Program-made: the position numbers and the translations under genes
In this document: piece by piece, positions 8,448 to 60,155 of the stretch
How positions within the stretch are numbered: position 1 is the first letter of the stretch
Layout of the letters: the number at the start of each line of letters is the position of its first letter
Notes under the pieces: model-generated
What the model saw: only the letters and a program-made list of their open reading frames with translations
Database searches by the model: none
What the model was told of the DNA's origin: nothing
NCBI GenBank assembly: GCA_002269645.1
Contig: NIVC01003363.1
Coordinates: forward strand, 1-64,000
Source of the DNA: Macrostomum lignano
Taxonomy: Eukaryota
DNA length: 64,000 nucleotides
Reading direction: 5' to 3'

Positions 8448-10867
8448 CTGCAAGGTCCGGGGTTCGAGTCCTAGAACATTAAATTGTAATCAAACTGGCA
8501 ATCGTTTTCTCAATTTCTCTGTAAATGTATAATTTTCCCTTTTCCAATGTATATTTACTGTTTATTATATTTTCATTTGTAAAGAATAGTTTTTATTTAA
8601 ATTGACATTTTGCATGCACATTGGCAAGTCATGGTTGTCTATGTGACTTAATTAATGTTTTGGCAAATTCAAAAAGGTAGAAGTATACTATATGTAGCAT
8701 ATATTGCAACTATAGGAGTTTTTGGCTTTCAAGATATTGTGATTTAAAAAAAAACAAATTCAGAAGCTGCAATTAAAACAAAGAATAGATTATCTAAGTT
8801 GCCAACAAGTAATTGAAGTTATTCATTGCAAATTTAGAAATCATCATATAAAATAGGCAAAAACTAAAGCATATATTAGTAATATCTTTGTGACACCATA
8901 TCAATAATGCCCTAAGTAGCTTATATAGCAATTGGCTTGCCAACTTAGCATTTAGCAACCTATGCCAATGAGACATGCCAGGTTTTCTATATCAGGTCAC
9001 AGCTGAAATTAAAACCTACACCATATAGTAGAGATGGAATAAAAATTTGGTATTCATATTTGGTATTTGGAAAGTAGGTTATTTTTTGCTATTTAATTCA
9101 TCATTGGATTCATTTAAATTTTTAACAAATATAAGAATAAAACAAAAGCAACTCCAATATTTTAAATATTTAAGTTTGTATAAGAAAAATATTAATATAT
9201 TAGTATTAGATTTGGTAGATAGCATCTACAAATGGGCTAGTGAATTAGTTTAATAGTGAGATAGTGCACTTTTCTATAATACTGTATATTCTTCTAGTAT
9301 ATTTTTGCTATGATAACAACCTATCATTTCTTAGAAAATATAATATTCAAATGTCTGCTAAAATATCTTTGTGTTAATGTTGTGATACAAAATAATTTTC
9401 TGCAAATAAATTTGTTTTAAATAGACCAGTCAACTAGTATAAATAGAAGCCCCAAGTGGGCCAAGGAAGGCAACTTGCAGAGACCTGCAAACCTGCAAAC
9501 TTGCAAGAACTTAGCTGATGGCTAAGTTTTCACTAAATCTATACGTATTTTTTATTTGGCTTCTTCAATTATTAAGAATTAAAAGCCCCAATTTGGGAGA
9601 GTTAAGATATGCTAAAAAGTAAGAATTGCCTTAGAGCAGTAGATCACCATTGGGCAATAGATTGCCTCAGAGCAGTAAAATGCCTTAGAGCAATAAATTG
9701 CCTCAGGGCAGTATAAGGCTAAGAAGCTGTGACCCTCTGATCCCAGGAATATCTAGGACTAAGAGAAGAACCCTTTAAAAGAGTAAAATAGGAGTATAAG
9801 GATAGGGTAGACAGATTTGGCAAATTTTGGCATATTTTTGTTGGTAATAAAAGCCTGTTGGCATAAATTAGTCATATAATCGCTCTTAGCCAATAGTGAC
9901 TTGCATAGGCCTATGTATATTGCCAATAGAAATGGCCAAGTGATTCCCAAGGTTGCGCATGTATGCCTTGGCAGATATATCTAGATTGGCCTATAGGATT
10001 TTTTTATTATAGCTAATTTGGTCAGAATTCTATTTAAAAGACTAGCCCCCCTAAAATGCCCATGGCAAATAAAATAAAAATATACTATAATTCTAGTTCT
10101 AGTTTATAGTCTGGGCCTATGACTGTACTTATATCCAAAAAGTTCATAGTTTCCTAGTAAATAATAAAATATTATAAAATAATATAAAATAATAAAAATG
10201 AAGGATTACAGGCCTATGCAGCTATGCTATAATCTAACCTGCCAATTTCATAATCTGGTAAAATACAAGAAAGAAAACTAGATAAATTGCAGTTAAAAAC
10301 CTATATAAATGTATTTATACTCATGTATATATTCATGTACACCTATATATATATATATATATATATATAAGTATTTCAATTATTTTTTTAATGAACTAGG
10401 CCCTATATAAGCCTGCACTGCCTCACATGCTTAAATCAATGCACAAGTTGGGGCAGAAGTCTTATTCAGCAAAGTAACTTGGGTTTGCATCAATTACTAC
10501 AACCAAAATTCCACAAACTGCCGTGGAAATAAGCAGGTATCATATCATTGACATGACAGACACCAATTACACAGGACAGTGCCATGGTGACATTTTTGTT
10601 ATTGGCGTGGGACTGTGGAAAAAAACATTGATACACATTTATTCATCATTATTTTAATAACCTACGCCTACATTGGTAATGGTATCCATCCATATACTAA
10701 GAATTATTGATCTTTTACAAGAAGTTTATAGACAGTTTGCATTACAAACAGACAGTGATGTCACCGATTCGAATGAGGCTGACGCTGTCACCGACTGACA
10801 AAATTAGACACGGAAGCATCTGAACTTGTCACCGATCTGACCAGTAGGCCTAACCGAATAAAGCATA

Positions 10868-40200: not shown

Positions 40201-43200
40201 TTTTCGTTTCTTAGAAAATCTTTTACAGGTGACTTCAGCGCCAGGGTTTACATTTTACACATCAGATACTCGGCTTTTCGTTTCTTAGAAAATCTTTTAC
40301 AGGTGACTTCAGCGCCAGGGTTTACATTTTAAACATCAGATACTCGGCTTTTCGTTTCTTAGAAAATCTTTTACAGGTGACTTCAGCGCCAAGGTTTACA
40401 TTTTACACATCAGATACTCGGCTTTTCGTTTCTTAGAAAATATTTTACATGTGACTTCAGCGCCAAGGTTTACATTTTAAACATCAGATACTCGGCTTTT
40501 CGTTTCTTAGAAAATCTTTTACAGGAGACTTCAGCGCCAGGGTTTACATTTTACACATCAGATACTCGGCTTTTCGTTTCTTAGAAAATCTTTTACAGGT
40601 GACTTCAGCGCCAAGGTTTACATTTTACACATCAGATACTCGGCTTTTCGTTTCTTAGAAAATCTTTTACAGGTGACTTCAGCGCCAAGGTTACTTCCAG
40701 CGCTGAGGCAATTCTCCATTCCGCTGGCTCCTGAGCACATACAAACGCGACAATATTGTAAGCAGGCACGCACTCATGCTGTACGACACGCTCACGCTCA
40801 ATCAGGGTGTACAGTGGCCCCGACTTTCTTATAGCCGGGCGTGTACACTCTCTGTGCGACAACTTCCTCATGGGTTTACCGCTGAGCTGCTGTGCCCCAA
40901 TCAAACAGGACAATGGACAAACAGGATAATTCAAATAGAGTTTAAGAATGACAGCTTACATTCTCTTTAATGTAGCTCCTGTCAGCCTCCGGAATGGTGA
41001 GCCACTGTTGGCCCAGCTGCATCCTGACTGAGCTATTCTTGGAGTACAGCTGGTTCTTGAGCTGCAGGCCGGCCTGCATCCTGACGAAGGTGGTGTTGTT
41101 AACATCGCGCAGGATCTCGGACAGCTGGCGTAGGAACTGCACCTAGAACAGGGAGGCCCACCGGGGTTTTATCCAGCTGCTAATGGCAGGATAATTAGCA
41201 CGGCTGCACACACCAATAACTCACCAGATTCTGGTTGGCTGCATCTTGCAGAAAGTTGAGCGCAGTCTCGCGCTGGGCCTTGTCTACAACAGTGGTTGAA
41301 TGAGAAACTTAGGAATTGCATACAAATTAAATGTAATTAGCCCATTGACCTTTTAATACAATTGAGAACCATACAAGCAATTATTAGCAAATACTACTTA
41401 CTACTTACCATGCCTGTATTATTGTTTTAATGTGTCTTGTTTTGCACACAAAAATGTAGGACCCTAAAGTTCTGGCATATAGATGGTACACACAGAGGCC
41501 AGAGCAATAGCAAAGAATTACTTTGACTACTCCTAACCATGGTATTAATAGACTAAAACTGAAAGATTATCTACTTTCCTCTAAATTATCTTACAAACCA
41601 ATAGTAGGAACCTTAGCGATATTTTGAAAGCCTATAAATGTTAAAAATTTCATTTTAAATATATATATTTTTATTTTATACTCATGGATATTATAAGCAA
41701 AGACATAATAAGCCAAAAGTTATATATATTTAAAAAGAGAATTTTTTAAGTTTTCTAATTTTTCAAATTTAGTCCTCTCATTAATTGCTTCATAAAGTAT
41801 AGTCAAAATGATGAAATCAATTAAACATATCCAATTATACAAAAAATTCTAGCATTCAAATTAATGCTTATTAATCTTGATATACCATGTTGATATACCA
41901 AATTGATATTTCAAAATCGGCACATTATACCAACTTTGATTGACTAATACATAAACTTTAGAAAAGAGGTTTGCAAAACACAATTTAAATTTGTTTTGAT
42001 TTTTTAAAATATTTTTTAATTCTTTTGCTTATATAGTTAACCATGCTAAATGTGGTCCAATTTGTTGCAGGGGTTGGTATCTTTGAACATGACAATCTAT
42101 ACTAGTTTTAGACATAATACTATTAACAAAGACATTGTTAAGTGGCTCCCCACCCTATTCTCATCCCTATCCTTATTTCCCAGTAGACAAATAGTTTTAA
42201 AAGAAAAAGGTTTTTTGTCCACTTAGCAAATGAGCTGTCAGCAGACAAAAGAACTAGAAACCTGTTCAACACAATGAGGTAATTCAAGTTGAAGTTACAA
42301 CACAATTATGATACAATTTTTAGTAGCATTAGAATTCAGCTAATCAGTTTTTTCTCTAGCATTCTTGCAATGTATTTCAAGTCAACAAGTTTGCTTGGCC
42401 TTTGCAAAAAAGCATGTTTTTTTAATATTTATTCCCTTTAACATTGAGCAATTTCTTAGCCAAGACCAGGCGCTGCGGAACAAGTTTTTGCCAGGGGGGC
42501 AAGACCAAGTTTCCAAAACTTGGTCTTGGTCTTGGAAAGACCAAGTTTCCAAGCCCAGACCCTGTCTTGGACAATGACCAAAAATTTGAGCAAAATTATG
42601 CTATTGAATGGTATTTGAGGGGGCAATGCCCCCCTGCAACTCAATGTCAGGGGGGCAGCTGCCCCCCCCCTGCCCCCCCTGTTCTGTGGCGCCTGGCCAA
42701 GACACATGTACTATCATAGGAAAATTTTTAATTGAATGGTGCAAGTTTGAAGAATTTTAGGTGGGGTCAAGGCCAAACCTATCTATATGTAAACTGCCTT
42801 TTATGCAATATTAAGGTGCCTAACACTGCCAATAAGGTAGAGTTTATCTATTATTAGGCTCTGTGATGACATGCTATCCAATATACCCTGCTTTGTGACT
42901 TTGCTTGCAAGGCTATATAATTTTTGGTTGTTGTTGTTATTATTTAAAATATTGGTTAAGCCATTTTTTTAAGCCATTTTGACCCTCTTATTATCTTAGT
43001 GCCTTGGCCATTATTGTTGTAAATTTAAAAAGCTGCTTTCTTATCTTGGTTCTTAGTTGGATCCAAAAACTGAGCTTATAGGCCTAATGTCAAATCTATA
43101 AATAGTAAGTGCAATTTTAATTAAGTTATAAATGTATTATAAAATTATCTGGCACAAACATATTACTACCTTCCCTTTGCCATTTTAGACTTTAAAGCTT

Positions 43201-44705: not shown

Positions 44706-45931
44706 GCCTGGGCTGGTCTGTTTTTTGAGATATTTAATTACTATAGGGCCTAAATATAGAATATCTTTTAAGTATAAATCGAACTTTCCAACCAAAAAAA
44801 AAATATTAAATATAATCTAACTAGATGATTCGAAATATATTTTAGCTAGCGAAGAATATTTCTATCCAGATTGAAAACTAAACTGGAGGAAAAATTTACC
44901 CAGCAGCCTTTTAAAAGAAACTTAGAAACCAAGTTGAGGATTGATACTGACAGGCCTAAATAAACTACAAATAATTTGGAAGGTAATAACCGAATAACGG
45001 CTACTAACAGCTAGCAAGAGAACGTGGGTATAGTCGGTTGACAGCTATGGGGCCAGCGACAAAATAGATGGTTAACGTGCGCAACTTGAGTGACATTTTA
45101 AGGGCGACGATCATTTACGATCGGGTGGTCCAATAAATGCAAATATTTTAAAGCTTTTAGTGAAGAACTACGACTTTTAATAAAACGTTTTTACTATGCT
45201 AATTTCAAAGCTTTGAAAAAATTGTGCGAAAAAATAAAAAACAAAAATATTTGTTTAAAACAACATAGAATTTAATTTCTTTATTTTCAAAGAACACTTC
45301 CGAGCTTTACTGAAATCTGGCTGGCGCGGTGGGTGTGAAAATGTGGAACTTTTTTTTCATTATTCATTATTCATTATTCATTATTCATTATTCATTATTG
45401 TATGCTTTATTCGGTTAGGCCTACTGGTCAGATCGGTGACAAGTTCAGATGCTTCCGTGTCTAATTTTGTCAGTCGGTGACAGCGTCAGCCTCATTCGAA
45501 TCGGTGACATCACTGTCTGTTTGTAATGCAAACTGTCTATAAACTTCTTGTAAAAGATCAATAATTCTTAGTATATGGATGGATACCATTACCAATGTAG
45601 GCGTAGGTTATTAAAATAATGATAAATAAATGTGTATCAATGTTTTTTTCCACAGTCCCACGCCAATAACAAAAATGTCACCATGGCACTGTCCTGTGTA
45701 ATTGGTGTCTGTCATGTCAATGATATGATACCTGCTTATTTCCACGGCAGTTTGTGGAATTTTGGTTGTAGTAATTGATGCAAACCCAAGTTACTTTGCT
45801 GAATAAGACTTCTGCCCCAACTTGTGCATTGATTTAAGCATGTGAGGCAGTGCAGGCTTATATAGGGCCTAGTTCATTAAAAAAATAATTGAAATACTTA
45901 TATATATATATATAAAAAAATAATTGAAATA

Positions 45932-45977
<46 letters not shown>

Positions 45978-46153
45978 ATCCCCCTTCCTCGCTGGCACGG
46001 CCGGGTTGGGCGACGGGTAGCGGTGTCGGGGTTCGGGTACTAGACTGCCCAGGGCTTACGAGCTCGATCGGCGACCCCGAGGCGTACGGACACTTCGGGG
46101 GGAGGTCAAGGTTGAGAAGTCGAGAGAGAGGGGAGGGGCGGCTGTGGGCGGGC

Positions 46154-46350
46154 GGCCACTCGACAGCCTGGTGAGTCAAGGAAGAGAGAGAGGGCTGCGG
46201 GCGGTCGGCCACTCGACAGCCTGGTGAGTCAAGGAAAAGAGAGAGGGCTGTGGGCGGGCGGCCACTCGACAGCCTGGTGAGTCAAGGAAGAGAGAGAGGG
46301 CTGCGGGCGGTCGGCCACTCGACAGCCTGGTGAGTCAAGGAAAAGAGAGA
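46154..46350. repeat. 53-bp x4 repeat inside the LTR (also 54065-54260), each with TGAGTCA / CTG|GTGAGT
   Basis: GGCCACTCGACAGCCTGGTGAGTCAAGGAA.. repeated 4 times in each LTR. Confidence 0.9.
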
Positions 46351-46460
46351 GTGAGAGAGAGAGAGAGATCAGGAGAGCGACCCCGAGGAACACAGGCAAT
46401 TGTCTCGACAGCTTACCGGGCCGGGTCGATTATAGCACTCATACACGGGAAGGCCGATCG

Positions 46461-46506
46461 ATTGCAATAAATTGAGTCTTCGCAGTAAGAGACCGTCTCT
46501 ACGGTT
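46461..46506 (-). other. Spliced-leader-like 46-mer in the 3' LTR
   Basis: Identical copy of 54372-54417. Confidence 0.75.
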
Positions 46507-46936
46507 GATCGCTGGTCACGTTCGTTTATTTATCGCGGTGGGCGCAAATGGGCGCAGGCACGGTGAGAAAAGGGGCGGGGTCTGAGCGTCGCCTTAAATA
46601 ACGAGTAAAAAGGGGCAGGGGCGCAAACAAGGGGGGGAGAAAGGGCTTAAACAATGGAGCTGATTGACAGCTGATTGGCTGCGGCGAGGGGAGGGTGGAA
46701 GCGCGCACGGCCAGGGAGAGGGAGAGAGAGCAGAGGCCCAGCCAATCAGCACGGCTAGCCAAAGGGCTAAACAGCCAAGGCGAGAGAGAGAGAGAAAGAG
46801 AGCAGAGGCTCAGCCAAAGGGCTCATAGCTCCAGACTGGCTTGAGCCGGGGGGGGGGTAACAATAATCAACTACCAAAGTCAACAACTATCAAAGTGCAC
46901 TTGCACCAGGGGAGCACTGTGACACAGGTCACAACA

Positions 46937-46948
46937 CCCTCCCCCCTA
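46937..46948 (-). other. Polypurine tract
   Basis: AGGGGGGAGGG on the element strand, immediately before the 3' LTR. Confidence 0.9.
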
Positions 46949-47039
46949 AAAAAAAGAAAACGACGCGCTTTGACTGAATGAAAATGAAAAAAAAATGTAA
47001 TGAAATGAAACTGAATGAAAGAGACCAAGAGTGTCAGGC

Positions 47040-47501
47040 AGCGGCCGAGAGCGCAGGACAGGGGCCGAGGATGTCGGACAGGCCGAGAACACCGGGCACG
47101 GCCGAGAATGCCGGACTGTGGCCGAAAACGCCGGGCATGGCCGAGAATGCCGGACAGCGACCGAGAATGCCGGGCAGCGGCCGAGAACGCCTGGCATGGC
47201 CGAGAATGCCGGACAGCGGCCGCGAATGCCGGGCAGCGACCGAGAACGCCGGGCATGGCCGAGAACGCCGGGCATGGCCGAGAGTGCCGGACAGCGGCCG
47301 AGAATGCCGGGCAGCGGCCGAGAATGCCGGGCAGCGACCGAGAACGCCGGGCATGGCCGAGAGTGCCGGACAGCGGCCGAGAATGCCGGGCAGCGGCCGA
47401 GAATGCCGGGCATGGCCGAGAACGCCGGGCATGGCCGAGAGTGCCGGACAGCGGCCGAGAATGCCGGGCAGCGGCCGAGAGCGCCGGGCATGGCCGAGAG
47501 T
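47040..47501. repeat. GC-rich ~19-20-bp tandem array (GGCCGAGAATGCCGGGCAGC variants) in the element's 3' untranslated region
   Basis: Directly visible, roughly 20+ variant units. Confidence 0.9.
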
Positions 47502-47632
47502 GTTCCCCGCCCTTCCTTCGGGGCCGCTCCCAGTGCCAAACAGAGGGATCACAACGACGATCAGAGGAGAGATGGGATGAAATGAAGGAGTGAAGGTCTC
47601 TTGCCCGCCCTGGCATCCTGCCCCAGAACCCC

Positions 47633-48514
47633 CTAGACCGCCACCTCCGCCGCCCGGCGCAACAACCCCAACACGCGTCCTCCGTCGATTAGTTCAAACT
47701 GAGGGATCGCAACACTCATGACGAACCGAGTGCTTCGCTTGAAGGCAGGCCGCCGCCAGACACGCCGAGCATGACCCCGACACTTGGCGCTGATGTCACG
47801 GAGAATGAACTTGACAGTCTGAGCCAAAAGCTCGGCGATTTCGCGTCGATGATCCAGCCGCTCGCTGCCGCACAGTCCCACCATTTCAGTCAAAAGCCGG
47901 AACATCGCAGCTGGACTCCCCGACAACAAAGCGTGCCGAAGCTCCGACCGGATTCGAGCTCTTCGCTGCGTTGCCTCCCCGCTCCAGGTGTATTCCACCT
48001 CGGTACTCGGCTCGCTCCTCATCAGCCACGCTGGCGACTCCCGTTGGTCGATGACGAGCTCCGGTTCGTCTTCTGACATCGAAGTTTCGCCGTCGGATTC
48101 ATTCAAGAGCTCTTCTTCCTCTGACTGCGTGATTTCACAGCAGCTCTGAGCAGTCTCCTCGCCGCCGCAACCACCACGCTCGCTTCCTTCCGACTCCCTG
48201 TCCTCGTCTGACTCTTCTGTTTCGTCTTCAATCGTTACGACAAACTCCTCCGGGACGCACATCCCATCCGGCGGGACAAAATACCGGGCGCACTCGAGCG
48301 GGTTGCTAACGGCATCCTGCCCGAACCGGTCGTACAGCGCTCGTCGAAACGGACACAGCAGGACCGCACTCGCATGCTGCAGCCTCTGGAAATTCTCCGT
48401 TCCACCGGGTCCACACTTGTCGGGGTGCCGTCGCAGGCTCTCACGGCGGTACGCACGTCGCAGCTCCTCCTCCGTCGCGAAGGGGCTGACACCAAACTCG
48501 GCGTAGAGGTCCAT
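47633..48514 (-). CDS. ORF3 of the LTR element: DnaJ/Hsp40 J-domain protein (293 aa from the ATG at 48514), acidic linker, unknown helical/basic C-terminal domain
   Basis: DLYAEFGVSPFATEEELRRAYRRESLRRHPDK..GTENFQRLQHASAVL....RRALYDRFG is a complete J-domain with HPD (48427-48419); GGCATGG Kozak context; lies between the pol stop and the PPT on the same strand. Confidence 0.88.
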   Translation of the reverse strand: MDLYAEFGVSPFATEEELRRAYRRESLRRHPDKCGPGGTENFQRLQHASAVLLCPFRRALYDRFGQDAVSNPLECARYFVPPDGMCVPEEFVVTIEDETEESDEDRESEGSERGGCGGEETAQSCCEITQSEEEELLNESDGETSMSEDEPELVIDQRESPAWLMRSEPSTEVEYTWSGEATQRRARIRSELRHALLSGSPAAMFRLLTEMVGLCGSERLDHRREIAELLAQTVKFILRDISAKCRGHARRVWRRPAFKRSTRFVMSVAIPQFELIDGGRVLGLLRRAAEVAV

Positions 48515-48715
48515 GCCCGGAAAGCAGTGCCTGCAACAACCACGACTCACTTTTGAGAGCAGGGCAATGGTTCCTTCGAGCCTCTTTGGGGCGCCGATCC
48601 TTCATCCCTGATGGCAGGGTTGGGCAGGTGGGACCTCCACTGACGGGCCTTAAGAGGGGAAATATATATTTTTGTTTGTGAAGCAGAGGCAATAACACGA
48701 GCCCAGTTTTCAATA

Positions 48716-48908
48716 ACGCGGGTGATGACGCAGACGATGCTTCGAACCAAATGTTGATGACGCAGGTGATGACGCGGATGATGCTTCGAACCAAATGTTG
48801 ATGACGCAGGTGATGACGCGGATGATGCTTCGAACCAAATGTTGATGACGCAGGTGATGACGCGGATGATGCTTCGAACCAATTATTTATGACGCAGGAG
48901 ATGACGCG
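48716..48908. repeat. 44-bp tandem array (~4 copies) rich in TGACG between pol and ORF3
   Basis: GATGACGCAGGTGATGACGCGGATGATGCTTCGAACCAAATGTT units. Confidence 0.9.
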
Positions 48909-48935
48909 ACATTGCGCACGCACTCACGTCCGCTC

Positions 48936-51900
48936 TTAATAATAAACGGGCGTTCCATAACGCTGCGGAACCCTTCGATCCCTCTGGGGTCGACCTTCGA
49001 TGACTTCAACTGGCGCTTCCGGCTGCGGCTGCACTCCTGGCTGCTGCACATCCATTGGTTCTCCCTCCTCTCGAACCCGCCCGGAATGTCGCCACCATCG
49101 CTCCTCATCCTCATCGTCCGATTCCTGCGAGTCCTCCCTGACGGATTCCGTCTCTTGAGCAGGACCTGGGTGGTACCTCCTTGGTGCAGGACGCCGAGGG
49201 CCACCGGTGCCGTCGACCGGGTACTTCCGGTACCGAGGCAGGAGGTTGTTAAAGTGCACCACCTTGATCGGCTTCCGTCGACCTTCCTGTCGAATCCTAT
49301 AGCGCGTCTCCGACAGCTTCTCGAGAACTACGGCAGGTCCGGTCCAGGGTGAGTGGAGCTTCGCTTTGGCACCGGCCTTCAACACGGGGTTGTAGACGAA
49401 CACCTCGTCGCCAGCCACGAATTCTCGACCCTTCACCTTCCGGTCGTACCAGTCTTTCTGCACTCGTTGATATGACGTTATTCTCTCACGCACCACCCGA
49501 TGGGCTTCCACGAGCGTCTCCCGCAGGTTCTGGACTTCCTCGCAGTACGGTTCGATGTCCAGTGGGCGCGCCACTCCCAAGTCAACTGGCAGAGACATCT
49601 CGCGACCATGCAGAAGGAAGAAGGGTGAGTAGCCGGTGCCGCGGTGCACACTGGAGCGATACGCCATGAGCGCCGGGGCAACGAATTCGTCCCACCGCCT
49701 CTGATCCGGCTCCTTCACCAGGTGCGCCCGGATCACTGCAGTCAGCGTCTTATTGAAGCTTTCCACTTGGCCGTTTCCAGAGGGGTGATAGGCGGTCGTA
49801 CGCGTCTTTCGGATATTCAGACTTTCGCACAGCTGGCCGATCAATTGCGACTCGAAATTGGCTCCCTGATCCGAGTGGATTGTTCCTGGGGCTCCGTAGT
49901 GACAGACCCACTCCTCGAGCATTGCCCTTGCACAGGTGCTGGCCGTCTGATCTGGCACCGGTACTGCCACTGGCCACTTACTGAACGCGTCCTGCATCGT
50001 CAGTATGTATTTGTTGCCTCGGACGCTGGTTGGCAGTGGTCCAATCAAATCCACCATCACTCTTTCAAACACATGGCTGCTGGGAATCGGCTCCAATGGG
50101 GCCTTCCGCCGCATCCCGGGCTTGCTCCGGTTACAGTCGTCACACCTTCGCACAAACTCCTCGACCTCTCGCTTCAAGCCGGGTCTCCAGAATCGGTTCC
50201 TGACTTTCTCCAGAGTCTTTGCTACGCCGAAGTGTCCACCTCCTGGTCCAGAGTGCAGCGTCTGCAGAGCGTCGGGGATCAATTTCTTCGGGAGAACAGC
50301 CCGCGGTGGGTGACGTCCCAGATCCTTGATGACGAGGGTGTTGTCCACAATTTCCAGCCGAGGCTTTTGTGCCCAGATGGCTCGGGTCGTTGGTGACGCA
50401 CCCCGAGGTGGCTCTTCGTTTGCTCGGCCGGCGTGCATCGACTGGTAAACTGGAGCGATGTCGTTGTCCACAGCTTGTGCTGCTGCCAGCTCATCTCGGC
50501 TGAGCAACCCGAGCAGCGTCGTTACCCTGACCCCGGGGAGGTCATCAGTCCGGCACGACGGGCAGTTATCCATTTCGGGATGTCGTCGCGTCGGCTTGCG
50601 TGACAGCGCGTCCGCATTCTGATGACGCGCCCCTGGCCGATGCTCCACTGCGAAGTCGAATGGCGCCAACCTCTCCATCCACCGAGCCAACTGGCCTTCC
50701 GGCTGCCTCATACTTCGGAGCCACTGCAGACTTGCGTGGTCGGTGCGCACCCGGAACCTCCGGCCAAGTAGATAGTACCGGAACCTCTCTGCGAATGTCA
50801 CCAGCGCCAGGAGCTCGATTCGTGTCGTGCAATAGTTGAATTCGGCCCCTTGCAGACGCCGACTCCCGTACGCAATAACCCGCTCTGACCCGTCTTCTTG
50901 TACCTGCGACAAGACTGCTCCGAGACCCTGTCGGGTACTTCCATCGGTATCCAAGATGAACTCACCAGCCGTGGGGTCGAAGTTCGGGTAGGCCATCACG
51001 CGGCAACCGGTCAATTCTTCTTTCAGCTTTTTGAAGGCCTCATCGTGTTCCTCTCTCCAACTGAACGGCTTGTCTTTCTTTGTCAGATCAAAAAGTGGTG
51101 CAGCGACTATCGAGAATTCTGGTATGAAGTTTCGGTAGTAACCAGCCAGACCCAGGAACGACTGAAGGTCTTTTGCATTTCTTGGAATGCTCCAGTCACG
51201 GACTTCCTTGATCTTCTCCGGGTCGACATCGATTCCGTCCTTTGACACGACGTGGCCAAGGAATTTGACCTCATCGGCCAGGAATCTGCACTTAGATGGC
51301 TTTAGCCTCAAGTTGGCTGCGCGCAGGCGCTGGAATACCGCCTCGAGATTCGTTAGATGCTCGCTGACAGTTCGGGACCAAATGATGATATCGTCGATGT
51401 AGACGAGCGCCATTTTCCACAGAAGGTCGTGTAGTACCATATTCATCAACCTTGTGAATGTCGCCGGCGCATTGGTCAATCCGAAGGGCAGCACCTTGAA
51501 CGCGAATTGCCCCCGATGCGGAATGACAAAAGCAGTCTTTTCTTGATCCTCCCTTTTGACCTTAACTTGCCAATAGCCGGAGCAAAGGTCGAGCGTCGAA
51601 AATACAGCCGCACCTCCGAGCGCTTCAAGTGCGTCATCGACACGCGGGATTGCTATGGCGTCCTTGACAGTTCGTTGATTCAACTCTCTGTAGTCGACAC
51701 ACAGTCGCAGTTCCCCATTCTTCTTACGGACACAGACCACTGGCGAACTCCACGGCGATTGGGTCGGTTCAATCATCTTCGTTGCCAAAAGCTCGTCGAT
51801 TTGTCGGTCGACTTCGCCGCGCCAATGTGGCGGTAGCCGTCGCGGAGGCTGTTTTACGGCTGTTCCGGTGGTCTCAATTTCATGCTGCACGATGTCCGTC

Positions 51901-52913
51901 GTCCCGAGGCGCGCTGTACTCTCTGCGAAAACATCTGCGTATCGATTCACCAATCTTAGGAAACTCGCTTTGTCTGCCCCCGTGAGCTGCTTGGAGCCGT
52001 GCTGGTTCAGTGCCGCCTCTGGGTCCCATGGATCGCAGCTGGGTCGTAAAACCGACGCTTGCTCTTCGATGCTGGCTACCAGAACCTCTTGAGCCGGATC
52101 TGATGGTCGAAACCAGCCGATGACAGCTCCCTTCCGCAGCCGCAGCTCGGAGTCCGTGACATTCGCGAAGTGAACTGGTAGGGTGTTGCCCTGCTGGATG
52201 AGGCAGACGCTCCTGGCTAGCATTGGTCTCTCATCGCTCTTCAGTTTTTCGTCTGGCTCGGCGACGCCGAGCACTCCGGAATTCTGTGTCGCTGTTCTCC
52301 GAATCCTGGCTGAGACGGTCCGTTCGTGATTGGCCGGAATGATCAAGTTTTCGTTCAGGTACAACCGGCAGACGACTGGTTTGTGCTTGGTCTCTCGGAT
52401 TGGCACACGTGAACCGTTCACGCGGAAAACTCCTCCGGCGAAATCGATTTGGCACCGGTGGCGGCGTAAGAAGTCGGTGCCTAGCAACAGTTCGTAGCCG
52501 ACCCCTTGGACCACCGCAATTGGCGTCTGTAAAGTTTCTGATCCGAACTGTAGGGGAAGCGACGCGCATCCTAACACATTCATGGGAGTTCCGTTCGCTG
52601 AGATCAGGTGGGTTTCCGAAGGGCTGAGTTCAACTCGAACCGACTTGCTCAACTGCCGCCAGGTCCTCTCGTTCACCAGCGACATGACCGAGCCCGAATC
52701 CAACAGACACGGCAACTCAATCTCGCCAATTTTTACCGACACGTAGATTGACACGGGATTAAAAGCTGTTGCAGGTTGATCTCTATCTCTTGAGCAGTCC
52801 GCCGGACATCCTGCTGCACGTCGCTCCGGGGCTGCATCTTCGTCTCGGGTTGGGGCCTCTACTGTCTCGGCGGAACTCCCTCGCCCCTGCGGAAGTTCCC
52901 CTTGCCGTTTCCC
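48936..52913 (-). CDS. pol: Pol polyprotein (PR-RT-RNaseH-INT), -1 frame to gag, open from the slippery site; no chromodomain
   Basis: LLDSGS, LCVDYRELN, PFGLTNAPATF, YIDD, ILDTDGS, H..GHFG..C..C, DLIGP, SDQG, HPSGNGQVE, GPY/F-like tail; no stops in 1272+ aa. Confidence 0.96.
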   Translation of the reverse strand, partial: GKRQGELPQGRGSSAETVEAPTRDEDAAPERRAAGCPADCSRDRDQPATAFNPVSIYVSVKIGEIELPCLLDSGSVMSLVNERTWRQLSKSVRVELSPSETHLISANGTPMNVLGCASLPLQFGSETLQTPIAVVQGVGYELLLGTDFLRRHRCQIDFAGGVFRVNGSRVPIRETKHKPVVCRLYLNENLIIPANHERTVSARIRRTATQNSGVLGVAEPDEKLKSDERPMLARSVCLIQQGNTLPVHFANVTDSELRLRKGAVIGWFRPSDPAQEVLVASIEEQASVLRPSCDPWDPEAALNQHGSKQLTGADKASFLRLVNRYADVFAESTARLGTTDIVQHEIETTGTAVKQPPRRLPPHWRGEVDRQIDELLATKMIEPTQSPWSSPVVCVRKKNGELRLCVDYRELNQRTVKDAIAIPRVDDALEALGGAAVFSTLDLCSGYWQVKVKREDQEKTAFVIPHRGQFAFKVLPFGLTNAPATFTRLMNMVLHDLLWKMALVYIDDIIIWSRTVSEHLTNLEAVFQRLRAANLRLKPSKCRFLADEVKFLGHVVSKDGIDVDPEKIKEVRDWSIPRNAKDLQSFLGLAGYYRNFIPEFSIVAAPLFDLTKKDKPFSWREEHDEAFKKLKEELTGCRVMAYPNFDPTAGEFILDTDGSTRQGLGAVLSQVQEDGSERVIAYGSRRLQGAEFNYCTTRIELLALVTFAERFRYYLLGRRFRVRTDHASLQWLRSMRQPEGQLARWMERLAPFDFAVEHRPGARHQNADALSRKPTRRHPEMDNCPSCRTDDLPGVRVTTLLGLLSRDELAAAQAVDNDIAPVYQSMHAGRANEEPPRGASPTTRAIWAQKPRLEIVDNTLVIKDLGRHPPRAVLPKKLIPDALQTLHSGPGGGHFGVAKTLEKVRNRFWRPGLKREVEEFVRRCDDCNRSKPGMRRKAPLEPIPSSHVFERVMVDLIGPLPTSVRGNKYILTMQDAFSKWPVAVPVPDQTASTCARAMLEEWVCHYGAPGTIHSDQGANFESQLIGQLCESLNIRKTRTTAYHPSGNGQVESFNKTLTAVIRAHLVKEPDQRRWDEFVAPALMAYRSSVHRGTGYSPFFLLHGREMSLPVDLGVARPLDIEPYCEEVQNLRETLVEAHRVVRERITSYQRVQKDWYDRKVKGREFVAGDEVFVYNPVLKAGAKAKLHSPWTGPAVVLEKLSETRYRIRQEGRRKPIKVVHFNNLLPRYRKYPVDGTGGPRRPAPRRYHPGPAQETESVREDSQESDDEDEERWWRHSGRVREEGEPMDVQQPGVQPQPEAPVEVIEGRPQRDRRVPQRYGTPVYY

Positions 52914-53839
52914 TGTTGCTGACGGGTTGGGCAGTTAGTCGCGATGTGCCCTGGCTTGTTGCAGAAGAAGCAGCGAATTCCTCCCGTTCGTCGAGGCTTC
53001 TGATGGTCGCCTTCGTCGGAGTCGGTCGGTCGAGCTGCGGCGCTGCTATGCGGTTCCGCTCTCAGCGACTCGAGCTGAACCACTTTGCCTTGAAGCTGCC
53101 TCACCAGTTTCTTCAACTCCTCGAGCTCTTTGTCCTTTTCTTGGGAGTAGGCTCCATCCTCCCGAGGCACAGATTCCGCCGCGCCGCTCACCACGAAGAC
53201 TCCTCGGTGGCCGCTGCCAGTTGCTCCAGCCGATCTCGGTCCCTTCGCCGCCTTGGACGCCGCCTCGAGCTGCCTCACCGCGCGTTGTGCTGCCACCAGA
53301 CCTTCGGGCTGCTGCAGGTAGAGCTTCTCTCGCTGGAGGTCGGAGAGTCTCACCCCTTGCATGAAGCGATCCTTCGCGAGGTCGTCCTGCAGCTCGGCAG
53401 TTGCCGCCGGGTAGGCACAGCGCACCAGTTCAAGGAGAGCATCTGCGTAGGCCTCCAACGACTCGCCATCCTTCTGATCTCGGGTTTTTAGCTCGACCTT
53501 GCTGTCCTGCTCTGTCCGGTACCGGGAGAAGCGAGCCTCCAACCGGGCGGTGAATCCCTCGTAGTCCAGCGGATCCACAGGATCGTCGGGTCCCGGCAGG
53601 TTCAGATTATCGACCGCAGCGTACGCCGTAGCGAGATCCAGCATGCTCATCAAGTGCTCGCGGCGATGCTCCTCGTCAATCTCGGCGGAGTCGCAATAAG
53701 CGTTGAAAGAGCGCAGCCAGAGTCGAAAATTCATGCTTGACGTGTACTTCACGGGCTTCGGGAGTCTCGGTGGCTGGGCTGGTCCATCCGCTCGCAGACG
53801 CTCGGCTAGCAGCCGAATCAGTTCGTCCACATTCGCCAT
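52859..53839 (-). CDS. gag: Retrotransposon Gag (326 aa) with CCHC zinc knuckle
   Basis: ATG 25 nt after the PBS; CFFCNKPGHIATNC knuckle; Q..GESLEAY..L capsid-like motif. Confidence 0.92.
   Translation of the reverse strand: MANVDELIRLLAERLRADGPAQPPRLPKPVKYTSSMNFRLWLRSFNAYCDSAEIDEEHRREHLMSMLDLATAYAAVDNLNLPGPDDPVDPLDYEGFTARLEARFSRYRTEQDSKVELKTRDQKDGESLEAYADALLELVRCAYPAATAELQDDLAKDRFMQGVRLSDLQREKLYLQQPEGLVAAQRAVRQLEAASKAAKGPRSAGATGSGHRGVFVVSGAAESVPREDGAYSQEKDKELEELKKLVRQLQGKVVQLESLRAEPHSSAAARPTDSDEGDHQKPRRTGGIRCFFCNKPGHIATNCPTRQQQGNGKGNFRRGEGVPPRQ
52874..52913 (-). promoter_or_regulatory. -1 ribosomal frameshift signal (G GGA AAC + 7-nt spacer + 9-bp stem, possible pseudoknot)
   Basis: Heptamer at 52913-52907 is in gag phase; pol is open in the -1 frame; stem GGAACTTCC/GGGAGTTCC; loop GGGGC can pair with a downstream GCCCC. 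Confidence 0.75.
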
Positions 53840-53863
53840 GACAGCTCACAAGCAAACTGAGCA

Positions 53864-53881
53864 GTCCCTGTTCGGGCGCCA
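53864..53881 (-). other. Primer binding site, tRNA-Lys(UUU)
   Basis: TGGCGCCCGAACAGGGAC, 1 nt after the 5' LTR; the canonical 18-nt tRNA-Lys3 PBS. Confidence 0.93.
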
Positions 53882-54371
53882 ATGTTGTATCCCCCTTCCT
53901 CGCTGGCACGGCCGGGTTGGGCGACGGGTAGCGGTGTCGGGGTTCGGGTACTAGACTGCCCAGGGCTTACGAGCTCGATCGGCGACCCCGAGGCGTACGG
54001 ACACTTCGGGGGGAGGTCAAGGTTGAGAAGTCGAGAGAGAGGGGAGGGGCGGCTGTGGGCGGGCGGCCACTCGACAGCCTGGTGAGTCAAGGAAGAGAGA
54101 GAGGGCTGCGGGCGGTCGGCCACTCGACAGCCTGGTGAGTCAAGGAAAAGAGAGAGGGCTGTGGGCGGGCGGCCACTCGACAGCCTGGTGAGTCAAGGAA
54201 GAGAGAGAGGGCTGCGGGCGGTCGGCCACTCGACAGCCTGGTGAGTCAAGGAAAAGAGAGAGTGAGAGAGAGAGAGAGATCAGGAGAGCGACCCCGAGGA
54301 ACACAGGCAATTGTCTCGACAGCTTACCGGGCCGGGTCGATTATAGCACTCATACACGGGAAGGCCGATCG

Positions 54372-54417
54372 ATTGCAATAAATTGAGTCTTCGCAGTAAG
54401 AGACCGTCTCTACGGTT
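54372..54417 (-). other. Spliced-leader-like 46-mer in the 5' LTR
   Basis: AACCGTAGAGACGGTCTCTTACTGCGAAGACTCAATTTATTGCAAT; resembles flatworm SL exons (AACCG start, AACCGT/ACGGT stem, ATTT.TTGCA end) but lacks the terminal ATG. Confidence 0.75.
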
Positions 54418-54435
54418 GATCGCTGGTCACGTTCG

Positions 54436-54444
54436 TTTATTTAT
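54436..54444 (-). promoter_or_regulatory. Overlapping TATA-like (ATAAATA) and poly(A) signal (AATAAA) of the LTR
   Basis: GATAAATAAAC starts ~27 nt upstream of the SL-like sequence; same motif at 46525-46533 in the 3' LTR. Confidence 0.55.
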
Positions 54445-55054
54445 CGCGGTGGGCGCAAATGGGCGCAGGCACGGTGAGAAAAGGGGCGGGGTCTGAGCGT
54501 CGCCTTAAATAACGAGTAAAAAGGGGCAGGGGCGCAAACAAGGGGGGGGAGAAAGGGCTTAAACAATGGAGCTGATTGACAGCTGATTGGCTGCGGCGAG
54601 GGGAGGGTGGAAGCGCGCACGGCCAGGGAGAGGGAGAGAGAGCAGAGGCCCAGCCAATCAGCACGGCTAGCCAAAGGGCTAAACAGCCAAGGCGAGAGAG
54701 AGAGAGAAAGAGAGCAGAGGCTCAGCCAAAGGGCTCATAGCTCCAGACTGGCTTGAGCCGGGGGGGGGGGGTAACAATAATCAACTACCAAAGTCAACAA
54801 CTATCAAAGTGCACTTGCACCAGGGGAGCACTGTGACACAGGTCACAACACATGAATATATACATGAGTATGAATACATTTATATAGGTATTTTAACTGC
54901 AATTTATCTAGTTTTCTTTCTTGTATTTTACCAGATTATGAAATTGGCAGGTTAGATTATAGCATAGCTGCATAGGCCTGTAATCCTTCATTTTTATTAT
55001 TTTATATTATTTTATAATATTTTATTATTTACTAGGAAACTATGAACTTTTTGG

Positions 55055-56603
55055 CAGTGTTGGGCAAGTTACTCAAAAAAAGTAACTTGCGTTACTGTAA
55101 CTTAAGTTACCAATTTTTAAAAAGTAACTTACGTTAGCCTAGTAACTTTAGACAAAAACCTGGTAACTTTTAAGTTACTGTCCGTTACTCACTTCCGTTA
55201 CCCATGTTATTAACAAAATTTTCTGCTTTTTTCACATTGCACATTTTTTCACATTGTTGTTACCGAAATTTGCCATTGGGCATTGGGATTAACCGATTAA
55301 CAGACAGAGACAGGAATTGGCGACACGATGTGAGGCAAGTAGAAGGACCAATGGGCAATGGCAATCAATAATTAAAATTATAAATGATAAAATAAACGAA
55401 TATCAAAAATTCAATAGAGTAAAATAAATAGAACTGTATAAAATGGTCTAGTGTACTGCACAAGGACGACTTAAGTAGAAGGACGGGAAACCTCGTTTCC
55501 TAGAAAAGTTCTGAAGGCACTTTTTCCCGAAAAAATACACTACGGAGATAGGAAGTTTTCATTTTTTCAGCACAAAAATTGTTATTGCGTTTGATAGGAG
55601 GCAGATCCAGTGTTCATCTTTTGATATGTTGTGCCTTTTTTATTGCTCTATCGATATTTTTAAAGCTTTTCGTTCAGAAAATTAGGATTCTATGTTAATT
55701 TTTTATTCTACGTATATTTCCTGTATCTAAAAATCACAAAAATGCATGACACAGCTCCAATATTTGGTTTTATGAACCTATTTTATCATCTCTGTTACAA
55801 ATATTTGCTACACAGTCGGGTAAGAATTATAAAAAAGACTCATGAAGCTAAAGAGCCGAGCCGTGGCATTCTAATGTATTTCAAGCACAAGACACGCGAA
55901 AATATACGTAGAATAAAAAATTAACATAGAATCCTAATTTTCTGAACGAAAAGCTTTATAAATATCGATAGAGCAATAAAAAAGGTACAACATATCAAAA
56001 GATGAACACTGGATCTGCCTCCTATCAAACGCAATAACAATTTTTGTGCTGAAAAAATGAAAACTTCCTATCTCCGTAGTGTATTTTTTCGGGAAAAAGT
56101 GCCTTCAAAACTTTTCTAAGAAACGAGGTTTCCCGTCCTTCTACTTAAGTCGTCCTTGGTACTGCAGTGCCAGTGGAGGGACTTGTGGAGGCTACAGATG
56201 AATTTCTTTCTTTGGTTTTTTGTTTGAATCAAACCTAGAAAATTTTTAGTAACGATCGAAAATGAAAGGCGAAAATATTTTACGGAAATTAACAAAGTAA
56301 AACATGTTTCAAGTATTTCTTCAATAATTAAGCGCAATACCATATGATACTATTACTTAATTTTGAATTTAGGAATGAAAAATGCAAAAACATGTGACAA
56401 CCGGCGTACTAGCTAAGAATTTCAGTTTTAAATTTAAATATGGCGATTGTTGAAAAGTAACTGTAACGGACTTCCGAAATTTGAGTAACTTACCGTTACT
56501 CCGTTACTAAAATAAAAAAGTAACTTGCGTAAGGAACGCTTTACGAAAAAGTAACTTGCGTTACCATTTGCAAGTTACTCGGTAACGGAAGTGCCCAACA
56601 CTG
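55055..56603. mobile_element. Non-autonomous hAT-like DNA transposon (1549 bp), right arm only
   Basis: 12-bp TIR CAGTGTTGGGCA; 8-bp TSD CTTTTTGG (55047-55054, 56604-56611); single copy of the site at 10135-10142 in the left arm; many subterminal GTAAC/GTTAC motifs; no ORF. Confidence 0.92.
55461..56158. mobile_element. Nested foldback MITE (698 bp) with ~260-bp TIRs, possibly P/Galileo-like
   Basis: CAAGGACGAC.. / ..GTCGTCCTTG termini, long near-perfect inverted arms (55461-~55719 vs ~55900-56158), 8-bp TSD GTACTGCA (55453-55460, 56159-56166). Confidence 0.88.
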
Positions 56604-58299
56604 CTTTTTGGATATAAGTACAGTCATAGGCCCAGACTATAAACTAGAACTAGAATTATAGTATATTTTTATTTTATTTGCCATGGGCATTTTAGGGGGG
56701 CTAGTCTTTTAAATAGAATTCTGACCAAATTAGCTATAATAAAAAAATCCTATAGGCCAATCTAGATATATCTGCCAAGGCATACATGCGCAACCTTGGG
56801 AATCACTTGGCCATTTCTATTGGCAATATACATAGGCCTATGCAAGTCACTATTGGCTAAGAGCGATTATATGACTAATTTATGCCAACAGGCTTTTATT
56901 ACCAACAAAAATATGCCAAAATTTGCCAAATCTGTCTACCCTATCCTTATACTCCTATTTTACTCTTTTAAAGGGTTCTTCTCTTAGTCCTAGATATTCC
57001 TGGGATCAGAGGGTCACAGCTTCTTAGCCTTATACTGCCCTGAGGCAATTTATTGCTCTAAGGCATTTTACTGCTCTGAGGCAATCTATTGCCCAATGGT
57101 GATCTACTGCTCTAAGGCAATTCTCACTTTTTAGCATATCTTAACTCTCCCAAATTGGGGCTTTTAATTCTTAATAATTGAAGAAGCCAAATAAAAAAAT
57201 ACGTATAGATTTAGTGAAAACTTAGCCATCAGCTAAGTTCTTGCAAGTTTGCAGGTTTGCAGGTCTCTGCAAGTTGCCTTCCTTGGCCCACTTGGGGCTT
57301 CTATTTATACTAGTTGACTGGTCTATTTAAAACAAATTTATTTGCAGAAAATTATTTTGTATCACAACATTAACACAAAGATATTTTAGCAGACATTTGA
57401 ATATTATATTTTCTAAGAAATGATAGGTTGTTATCATAGCAAAAATATACTAGAAGAATATACAGTATTATAGAAAAGTGCACTATCTCACTATTAAACT
57501 AATTCACTAGCCCATTTGTAGATGCTATCTACCAAATCTAATACTAATATATTAATATTTTTCTTATACAAACTTAAATATTTAAAATATTGGAGTTGCT
57601 TTTGTTTTATTCTTATATTTGTTAAAAATTTAAATGAATCCAATGATGAATTAAATAGCAAAAAATAACCTACTTTCCAAATACCAAATATGAATACCAA
57701 ATTTTTATTCCATCTCTACTATATGGTGTAGGTTTTAATTTCAGCTGTGACCTGATATAGAAAACCTGGCATGTCTCATTGGCATAGGTTGCTAAATGCT
57801 AAGTTGGCAAGCCAATTGCTATATAAGCTACTTAGGGCATTATTGATGTGGTGTCACAAAGATATTACTAATATATGCTTTAGTTTTTGCCTATTTTATA
57901 TGATGATTTCTAAATTTGCAATGAATAACTTCAATTACTTGTTGGCAACTTAGATAATCTATTCTTTGTTTTAATTGCAGCTTCTGAATTTGTTTTTTTT
58001 TAAATCACAATATCTTGAAAGCCAAAAACTCCTATAGTTGCAATATATGCTACATATAGTATACTTCTACCTTTTTGAATTTGCCAAAACATTAATTAAG
58101 TCACATAGACAACCATGACTTGCCAATGTGCATGCAAAATGTCAATTTGAATAAAAACTATTCTTTACAAATGAAAATATAAAAAACAGTAAATATACAT
58201 TGGAAAAGGGAAAATTATACATTTACAGAGAAATTGAGAAAACGATTGCCAGTTTGATTACAATTTAATGTTCTAGGACTCGAACCCCGGACCTTGCAG

Positions 58300-58740
58300 G
58301 CGGGCAAATCCGGCGCATCCTCGGGCTACATGTGCAGCCTGCCCGACGAGCTGCAGCAGAAGCTGAAGAAATTCCGACTGCGCAAGGAGAAAAATGTGGC
58401 CGCCATTGTGCTGAAAATCGACCGCGAGAAGATGGAGGTCTGCGTGGAGACCGAGGTTCAGGACTGCAGCATCGAGGACATTGTGGAGGAGCTGTCCGAG
58501 CACCAGCCGCGCTACCTGCTGCTGAGCTACGTGCACTCGTACCCTGACGGCCGGGTCACCTACCCGCTGATGTTCATCTTCAGCACCCCGCGTGACAGCA
58601 ACCCGGAGCTGCAGGTGCTGTACACCGGCACCATCAAGACCGTCATTGATGTGGTCGGCCTCACCAAGGTGTTCGAAATTCGCAGCACGGACGAACTGGA
58701 CGAGGAATGGCTGCAGCAGAAGCTGGAGTTCTACCGGTGA
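58300..58740 (+). CDS. GMF: Glia maturation factor, second copy
   Basis: Identical 146-aa translation to the left copy; differs by synonymous GCA/GCG and ATT/ATC. Confidence 0.93.
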   Translation, partial: AGKSGASSGYMCSLPDELQQKLKKFRLRKEKNVAAIVLKIDREKMEVCVETEVQDCSIEDIVEELSEHQPRYLLLSYVHSYPDGRVTYPLMFIFSTPRDSNPELQVLYTGTIKTVIDVVGLTKVFEIRSTDELDEEWLQQKLEFYR

Positions 58741-60155
58741 CTTCGGCCTGTGTTTTGTAGCTGCCGGATGTCCTGCCTGTCTCCACTGGAACTTGCTTGG
58801 TGTGTGCGAGCTGTTTTAGGCTAGAAATTTTATTCATATTTATGCCAATAACTTACATGCTTTGATTCGCCTGAGATTTCAGTTTATACTCAGCTTATCG
58901 CCCTGGATGCCACCCCAGCAATTTCAAAGCTGTTATACCATGTTTTTGTTTGTCTGAAACAGAATTCTGTTAATTGTGCTGCCACCTGGGAAGGCTTTGG
59001 ATGAAATCGCTTCTCATGTATTCCTGCTTCGTTAATTCTTTAGCATGTAAATTTTAATAAATCCATGGTTATGCAGACTTGTCATATTTGTGCCTGTCTA
59101 AAATTTTAGCCGTTTATCTATTAAACCTGATCTTTCCGAATAATCAATCAATTTTTATTCTTGGCAAGCCGATGACAACCACAAAGCTGATTTTTCTAAT
59201 TGACAATAAATCAATTTGTGCTGTTTAGCTTTGATCAGCAACACGAGATGTCCTGTGCAACAGAAACACCTGTTCTGCTTTCCTCTGCCTTTAGTTTTGT
59301 TGCTTAGGACCTTTGTCTGTGGAATTACTGAGTAGTCAATGCTGGGACACTTCACCCGCCATTGGTCCTGAGACTGGGACACTTCACCCGCCATTGGTCC
59401 TGAGACTGGGACACTTCACCCGCCATTGTCCTCAGACTGGGACACTTCACCCACCATTGGTCCTCAGACTGGGACACTTCACCCGCCATTGGTCCTCAGA
59501 CTGGGACACTTCACCCGCCATTGTCCTCAGACTGGGACACTTCACCCGCCATTGGTCCTCAGACTGGGACACTTCACCCGCCATTGGTCCTCAGACTGGG
59601 ACACCTCACCCGCCATTGGTCCTCAGACTGGGACACCTCACCCTCCATTGTCTTCAGACTGGGACACTTCACCCGCCATTGTCCTCAGACTGGGACACTT
59701 CACCCGCCATTGTCCTCAGACTGGGACACTTCACCTGAGACATTTTCCAATATAACTTCATCTAAATCAAAGCTTTAAAATTTTTCAATAGTTCTGAATG
59801 TGAGGAAATTAGCAGCCTAGTGCTTAAAATTGCTCGGTACATTGATAAAAAACTGCTCAGACGCTCTGCATTAAAAATCAAATGCCAAAAAACAGTAAAA
59901 ATAAAGTTGTATAAGCATGCGTTCGAGCAGTTTTTCAGATTAAAATTAAAAAGATTTTAAAATTCTACATGTAGTAATGTCAACAGCATACTACTCATCG
60001 ATTCTTCACCTCGTTAGCAGTATCTGTGGCTTTTCATTTCGTCTGTTGATAAGACAGCTGATTGAGCATTCCGGTAGCTCAGATGTCATAGGATGCTATT
60101 ACGAGCTAGATAAAGCCCAGTCACGTGACAGCTGTCCGACCCAATTCTCCTGCAG

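Follow-up and report, generated by a model that had tools for sequence, protein, structure and literature searches.

A complete spliced-leader exon within both LTRs of a Macrostomum lignano Ty3/gypsy element, probably a relic of trans-spliced and reverse-transcribed element RNA

Introduction

Retroelements and spliced leaders (SLs) have been found in association before, in several different arrangements. SLACS, CZAR and NeSL-1 are non-LTR elements that insert into SL RNA genes. In Caenorhabditis elegans, the Ty3/gypsy element Cer1 makes a subgenomic RNA that is trans-spliced to SL1; an SL acceptor lies near the 5' end of the element, the leader is carried by the subgenomic RNA only and not by the 8-kb genomic RNA, which escapes trans-splicing, and that study reported no copy of SL1 in the DNA of the LTR (PMC3315495). 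In parasitic flatworms, 597 SL-like loci within LTR and LINE elements have been noted, and the same origin as the one favoured here was proposed for them (Mol Biol Evol 2025, PMC12582326). Relic SLs in the retrogenes of dinoflagellates arose likewise, as trans-splicing followed by reverse transcription and integration yields a DNA-encoded SL as the mark of an RNA stage (PMC12014239, PMC6050394).

In this study, we analysed a stretch of 64,000 nucleotides from Macrostomum lignano, a flatworm that is free-living (contig NIVC01003363.1, positions 1 to 64,000; referred to as “the window”), in which both LTRs of an apparently intact and recent retrotransposon contain a copy of the whole 45-nt SL exon, with an acceptor and a flanking duplication still visible. 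Like the loci of parasitic flatworms, this is a DNA-encoded SL in a flatworm retroelement without any other SL-RNA feature, but those loci, which were discarded and were dealt with in a passing remark without junction analysis, come from parasitic species and hold partial leaders (PMC12582326). The dinoflagellate relics stem from host genes retroposed in trans and lie at the 5' end of a gene, whereas the presumed relic of M. lignano sits in the element's own terminal repeat and is propagated by the element itself. The arrangement also differs from that of SLACS, CZAR and NeSL-1, as the SL exon is inside the element and the flanks of the element are not SL genes. As with Cer1, the host is an animal that uses SL trans-splicing, although in Cer1 the leader is known from RNA and not from the LTR. 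No SL copy in an LTR is mentioned in the M. lignano literature that we examined, and a paper on a heat-shock LTR retrotransposon of this species mentions neither SL, nor trans-splicing, nor DnaJ (PMC12801592). SL relics in retroelements are thus known, while a member from M. lignano with visible junctions appears to be undescribed.

Results

The retrotransposon and its surroundings

The element, an LTR retrotransposon of ~8.9 kb, lies on the minus strand at 45971..54851 (all features of the element given below are on this strand) and consists of a 5' LTR, PBS, gag, pol, ORF3, a repeat region, a PPT and a 3' LTR. The 5' LTR (53882..54851) is 970 nt long with the termini (G)TGTTG...CAACA(T), and the 3' LTR (45971..46937) is 967 nt long; over 967 aligned nucleotides the two show no substitutions and two small indels. 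The PBS of 18 nt (53864..53881) follows directly 3' of the 5' LTR, and the polypurine tract (46938..46960) adjoins the 3' LTR. Searches against Pfam identified a CCHC zinc knuckle in gag (52859..53839, 326 aa) and, in the pol ORF (48936..52754, 1272 aa), protease, RT, RNase H and integrase in the Ty3/gypsy order; the element belongs to the LTR retrotransposons of the Ty3/gypsy type. Its pol shows 100% identity to BOX15_Mlig001877g1 (GCA_002269645.1), and no exact record of the gag in the window was found. ORF3 (47633..48514) begins with an N-terminal J (DnaJ) domain, an accessory gene that is unusual in a Ty3/gypsy lineage. Neither stops nor frameshifts were seen in gag, pol and ORF3, and their lengths resemble those in the nearest relative, L005, which is described below.

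Several parts of the element are repetitive. The U5 part of the LTR carries 53-nt tandem repeats (53991..54262, and 46080-46351 in the other LTR), the interval from the end of pol to ORF3 contains 44-nt repeats (48713-48908), and 39- and 20-nt repeats are found downstream of ORF3 (47080-47530). As the latter open all six frames, the open frame “ORF4” (46867-47616) provides no evidence of a gene.

Almost all of the window (2578-63813, with its centre near 28100) is one large inverted duplication with arms that are 99-100% identical; for example, 13684-16663 pairs with 39655-42634, and 7351-9553 with 57194-59396. As the arms differ by two mobile-element insertions, the structure could be a real palindrome, or alleles or paralogues that the assembler joined head to head. 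One of these insertions is the retrotransposon, whose empty site is found in the other arm (10135..10600, compared with 45668-45967 and 54850-55054), and two near-identical copies of the locus therefore differ in the presence of the element, the insertion being polymorphic. The lack of substitutions between the LTRs is in agreement with this, and the element is apparently young, or recently inserted. No target-site duplication was seen in comparison with the empty arm, and one junction lacks ~12 nt of the target beside a (TA)n tract. The other insertion, also in the right arm only (55055-56603, 1549 nt, AT-rich), is bounded by terminal inverted repeats of 12-13 nt (CAGTGTTGGGCA...), and 8 bp of the target, CTTTTTGG, are duplicated around it (55047-55054 and 56604-56611); it resembles a non-autonomous DNA transposon of the hAT type. 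Satellite arrays with periods of 74, 40 and 28 nt (15478-16887 plus 39507-40842; 20341-about 22500 plus 33595-about 35900; 24872-about 27000) are mirrored in both arms and contain spurious long ORFs without a Pfam match.

A second copy of the family and its relatives

A second copy of the family, L001, is present at a different locus (contig NIVC01003073.1) and is 99.69% identical to the copy in the window over 5506 nt of the internal region. Its LTR has two more of the 53-nt units (106 nt; the array lies at about 8218-8535). Beyond this, the search for gag homologues returned only three relatives, at 44-45% identity, and the search with ORF3 none at E <= 1e-6. The nearest relative is L005, a 7-kb metagenome contig that has a gag of 44% identity, a pol, a J-domain ORF3 and the same 18-nt PBS; its ORF3 (5865-6659) shows 32% identity to that in the window and shares a C-terminal block. 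The PBS, which looks like a tRNA-Lys-type site, is identical in L005 (821-838) and in another contig, L006 (123-140), and so is shared by families in which gag is only 44% identical. No tRNA gene matching it was found by ARAGORN in the window and six loci.

Both LTRs contain the SL exon

The initial annotation of this DNA had pointed to a 46-nt stretch in both LTRs as a copy of the flatworm SL. The 46-mer has exactly two occurrences in the 64-kb window, at 54372-54417 and 46461-46506, both on the minus strand and at equivalent positions of the two LTRs, as had been claimed. None would be expected by chance (n=100 shuffles), and a chance origin of the SL match was rejected. The SL-exon copy proper comprises 45 nt (54372..54416 in the 5' LTR, with an identical copy at 46461..46505 in the 3' LTR); it occupies LTR positions 436-480, starting 435 nt inside the repeat. 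When compared with the published M. lignano SL, which is 44 nt long (PMC5173321), the copy is identical at 42/44 positions, so that the identification of the motif as the SL of this very species is correct. Its differences from the 45-nt SL exon are an A for G at nt 1, a G for A at nt 7, and AT for TG at nt 44-45. Owing to the last of these, the terminal CATG of the SL reads CAAT in the LTR, and the loss of the terminal AUG, also part of the initial annotation, is real. The presence of an SL copy in both LTRs is thereby confirmed. Apart from these two sites, neither a search allowing <=3 mismatches nor short-word BLAST detected further SL-like stretches in the window, the remaining matches being at chance level (10-14 nt), and no Rfam family matched any part of the window at the gathering thresholds.

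The 5' LTR of L001 reads CCAG-CGATCA-GCCGTAAAG...TTGCAAT-CGATCGG over the same region. Since L001 has the bases of the true SL at both nt 1 and nt 7, the A and the G found at these positions in the window are derived, while CAAT, being common to the two copies, is older. An assembly artefact was rejected, as the block occurs with sequence variants at two different loci. In the LTR of L005, the SL is absent, and three other gypsy families of M. lignano (L002-L004) as well as two relatives taken from ENA assemblies (L014 and L015) likewise have no SL-like stretch. The block is therefore a derived peculiarity of one family.

The block is the exon alone and not an SL RNA gene

For comparison with genuine SL sequences, metagenome contigs were scanned with the SL core, the letters of which were taken from the window. 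Five metatranscriptome contigs (L008-L011 and L013) start with an SL that ends in CATG and continue into five different mRNAs, while a genomic metagenome contig, L012, contains a complete SL RNA gene of the Macrostomum type (615-723, 109 nt). Macrostomid flatworm sequence is thus present in public metagenomes, L012 coming from one sample and the five SL-mRNA contigs from another. No viral contig was recovered with the SL core.

In the gene of L012, a 45-nt exon starting with G precedes GTAAG, which is followed by a hairpin, the Sm-like AUUUUUAG and a final hairpin. The Macrostomum SL RNA gene (PMC8629364; L012) and the LTRs share the same 45-nt exon, of which nt 1-43 are without mismatch between the gene in L012 and the copy in L001; the gene has a GTAAG donor, hairpins, an Sm-like site and a significant fold, whereas the LTR has none of these. 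When the 109 nt were folded and compared with shuffled sequences, z was -3.3 for the gene in L012 and +0.7 for the equivalent stretch of the LTR. Similarity between the two is confined to the exon, which ends in ...GCAAT|CGATCG in the LTR and in ...GCATG|GTAAG in the real gene, and no donor, Sm site, SL-RNA intron or SL-RNA fold follows the SL copy in the LTR. As the similarity stops at the end of the exon, what the LTR contains is only the spliced exon, in its full extent from first base to last position.

These comparisons also bear on the idea that the block represents a gene or pseudogene for SL RNA, or that SL RNA genes are targeted by the element as they are by SLACS, CZAR and NeSL-1. 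Such an idea would explain the presence of the exon sequence. It is opposed by the lack of a donor, an Sm site, an SL-RNA fold, similarity in the flanks and a match in Rfam, by the position of the block 435 nt inside both LTRs, and by the flanks of the element, which at two unrelated loci are AT-rich and are not SL repeats. Both an SL RNA gene or pseudogene and SL-gene targeting were rejected on these grounds, and we consider this explanation to have a negligible probability.

The junctions point to capture from a trans-spliced RNA

The sequence that flanks the SL copy is informative about its origin. Immediately upstream is CCAG (54426-54423), which includes an acceptor-like CAG, followed by CGATCA (54422-54417); immediately downstream is a second version of this repeat, CGATCG, followed by GCC (54363..54371). 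The order is thus CCAG-CGATCA-[SL]-CGATCG-GCC, and the bases 3' of the SL copy are the bases found 3' of the CAG just upstream. When the upstream CGATCA plus SL nt 1-3 (GCC in L001) is compared with the 9 nt that follow the insert, 8 positions match. The chance of finding a 5-nt flanking repeat together with a CAG is of the order of 1e-4 (calculated by hand and post hoc). The published splice motifs are GT[G/A]AG for the donor and [T/C]TNCAG for the acceptor (PMC8629364); the CAG at the junction is a weak acceptor, preceded by a purine-rich stretch without a pyrimidine tract, and it does not fit the full [T/C]TNCAG.

While the anatomy of the junctions can be read directly, we infer from it a trans-splicing event and a jump at a microhomology. 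The ancestral LTR would have read ...AATAAACGAACGTGACCAG|CGATCGGCCTTCC..., the junction being GACCAG|CGATCGGCCTTCC; this is a reconstruction from the duplication alone, and the unoccupied form of the LTR would be expected to read ...CCAGCGATCGGCC.... One RNA of the element would have been SL trans-spliced at the CAG, giving an RNA that starts with SL-CGATCGGCC... and continues through U5 to the PBS. During reverse transcription of this RNA, minus-strand strong-stop DNA would have extended to the first base of the SL, and its tip, without the normal R homology, would then have made an aberrant first jump, in which the complement of SL nt 1-3 (GCC) may have paired with the GCC after CGATCG near the 3' end of the RNA. 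The LTR rebuilt by such a jump would contain the entire SL exon between two copies of CGATC(G). Since each cycle forms the LTRs anew from R and U5, the block would be inherited by all descendants in both LTRs. The model needs three substitutions after the capture, of which two affect SL nt 44-45 and the third the base that precedes SL nt 1.

Thus, the data agree with the proposal that reverse transcription of a trans-spliced RNA led to the capture of the leader: the exon is whole, no intron is present, CGATC(A/G) is duplicated, and CCAG precedes the insert. We regard the capture origin as well supported. For the fuller statement that the block is a relic of a trans-spliced and reverse-transcribed RNA of the element, and that it is today an internal passenger, we consider the evidence to be favourable on balance. 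The block would now most likely be a passenger in the 5' untranslated region, and no role as a leader is needed.

Two other routes for the insertion of the exon should be considered here. One is a template switch of the reverse transcriptase from the element RNA to a free SL exon, a splicing intermediate, or to the 5' end of a co-packaged trans-spliced host mRNA, which would have been copied to its end before a jump back to the element RNA. A full-length exon without its intron, the GCC microhomology at the upstream junction and the substitutions beside the junctions are all compatible with such an excursion. It would, however, require two jumps instead of one, a host mRNA as donor should have left host exon sequence after the SL, and the identity of the bases after the SL with those after the upstream CAG acceptor would be left unaccounted for; we therefore consider template switching to be unlikely. 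The other route is a DNA-level insertion, by LINE machinery for instance, of a separate SL retro-copy into an ancestral LTR, with CGATC as the target-site duplication. Direct repeats do flank the insert, but there is no A-rich tail at its 3' end, a free exon of 45 nt is an unlikely template for a LINE, and the CAG directly before the repeat would have to be a coincidence, all of which makes a DNA-level insertion very improbable.

Position of the block relative to transcription start and poly(A) signals

The initial annotation had placed the SL copy at the predicted transcription start of the element, downstream of an ATAAATA box. According to this explanation, ATAAATA would be a TATA box and the RNAs would start at the SL copy; selection would keep the SL-like leader for the resemblance it gives to trans-spliced host mRNAs, with effects on translation, stability or evasion, and the AUG would have been removed to avoid an upstream start. 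The box is indeed located as described: it starts 27 nt 5' of the 46-mer, a spacing compatible with a TATA box, and the copy reaches the first base of the SL, as would be expected of a former RNA 5' end. That the family was recently active, as judged by the identical LTRs and the empty other arm, is also in keeping with it.

However, the box (ATAAATAAA, 54436..54444) contains an AATAAA (54441-54436) that occurs nowhere else in the LTR and ends 19 nt upstream of the SL copy. The 970-nt LTR contains no ATTAAA, and neither AATAAA nor ATTAAA is present downstream to close an R region starting at the SL. As it holds the only AATAAA, 19 nt before the SL, the box is more likely a polyadenylation signal, and the start site of an LTR must lie upstream of its poly(A) signal. 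Some 70 nt farther upstream is a candidate TATA box, the block TATTTAAGG...CTCAG...CCCC (54483..54511), which includes TATTTAA, has 24/29 positions in common with L005, and is the only promoter-like stretch shared with that relative. A global alignment of the LTR in the window with that of L005 was uninformative; local BLAST recovered only this TATA-like block and the PBS. Similarly, in L003, another M. lignano family, TATTTAA is followed about 100 nt later by AATAAACG.

The conserved TATTTAA, the AATAAA box and the layout of L003 together suggest that the RNA start is more likely near 54480, a position for which we have a modest preference. With a start near 54480, R would be about 65 nt long and the SL would lie about 65 nt inside the RNA. 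Cleavage may then occur at the CA within CGATCA, some 19 nt downstream of AATAAA, and the SL copy would come first in U5, at the R/U5 border. Both the start and the poly(A) site are predictions from sequence signals. L005 has no AATAAA-like hexamer at all, and canonical signals are therefore not obligatory in this lineage. Taken together, the position of the AATAAA and the conserved block upstream speak against the SL copy being at the transcription start.

Substitutions within the block and loss of its ATG

Besides homopolymer indels and the two extra 53-nt units, 4-6 substitutions in about 966 nt distinguish the LTR of the window copy from that of L001. The 46-nt block contains two of them (SL nt 1 and nt 7), the divergence elsewhere being 0.31%; for the two copies compared, the Poisson probability of at least two substitutions in the block is about 0.009 (calculated by hand). 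If anything, the block changes faster than its flanks, and it does so in the most recently inserted lineage. The SL copy is thus not better conserved than the LTR around it, which counts against selection for an SL-like leader, as does the fact that the closest relatives do without an SL.

Purging of an upstream AUG fits the SL itself but not the leader as a whole. Both of the old differences hit the last two bases of the SL and remove its ATG, an outcome with a probability of about 0.003 (3/990 pairs; calculated by hand and post hoc), and the loss of the terminal ATG is non-random. It is plausible that there was selection against the SL's own AUG, so that the block may not be entirely neutral. 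The loss counts in favour of an SL-like leader at the RNA start. In contrast, the leader from 54417 to the gag ATG contains one ATG where 2.9 would be expected, and 160/1000 dinucleotide shuffles have as few; purging of ATG from the leader as a whole was rejected, as the depletion is not significant. The one ATG between the SL copy and the start of gag (54351..54353) persists 20 nt after the SL; it opens a 9-codon uORF and is in the frame that the SL's own ATG would have had.

Splicing signals elsewhere in the element

A GTAAG in the leader (54323..54327) resembles a 5' splice donor and agrees with the donor motif GT[G/A]AG (PMC8629364). Directly before ORF3 is an acceptor, ttgttgcag| in the window (ending at 48531) and cctgcag| in L005, and both fit [T/C]TNCAG (PMC8629364). 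The acceptors of ORF3 and the GTAAG in the leader suggest that ORF3 is probably expressed from a subgenomic RNA that is spliced or trans-spliced, as Cer1 does with SL1 (PMC3315495), and elements of this kind do come into contact with the splicing machinery.

Discussion

The reading of the SL block as a host-mRNA mimic at the start of the element's transcripts is not supported by our results and is somewhat contradicted by them. About 30% of M. lignano mRNAs carry the SL. The hypermodified (TMG) cap, by which genuine SL mRNAs are distinguished, is acquired on the SL RNA particle, and a leader encoded in the DNA would carry an ordinary m7G cap. With the only AATAAA within the presumed TATA box, a conserved promoter-like block 70 nt farther upstream, and a block that has itself accumulated substitutions, we consider it improbable that transcripts start at the SL copy and that selection maintains it there, in spite of the suggestive spacing and the lost ATG. 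It is similarly doubtful that a leader, once captured, was co-opted, with the RNA start at or near the SL and with the AUG-less leader altering translation, stability or recognition. A leader that proved to be conserved and to form the 5' end of the RNA would make this one of the rare mobile elements to have adopted a tag of host mRNAs, but the evidence leans against this.

The relic explanation, which we favour, has more general implications. When trans-splicing or SL RNA genes are called by pipelines on the basis of SL-containing reads or BLAST hits, these LTRs will be picked up as well. Within Macrostomum, the SL block can serve as a lineage marker for dating and tracing the family. Most likely, these LTRs are a natural record of an LTR retrotransposon RNA that was trans-spliced near its 5' end and was still copied back into DNA, and the junction, with its acceptor CAG and a duplication of 5-9 nt, would show how the first strand transfer was rescued.
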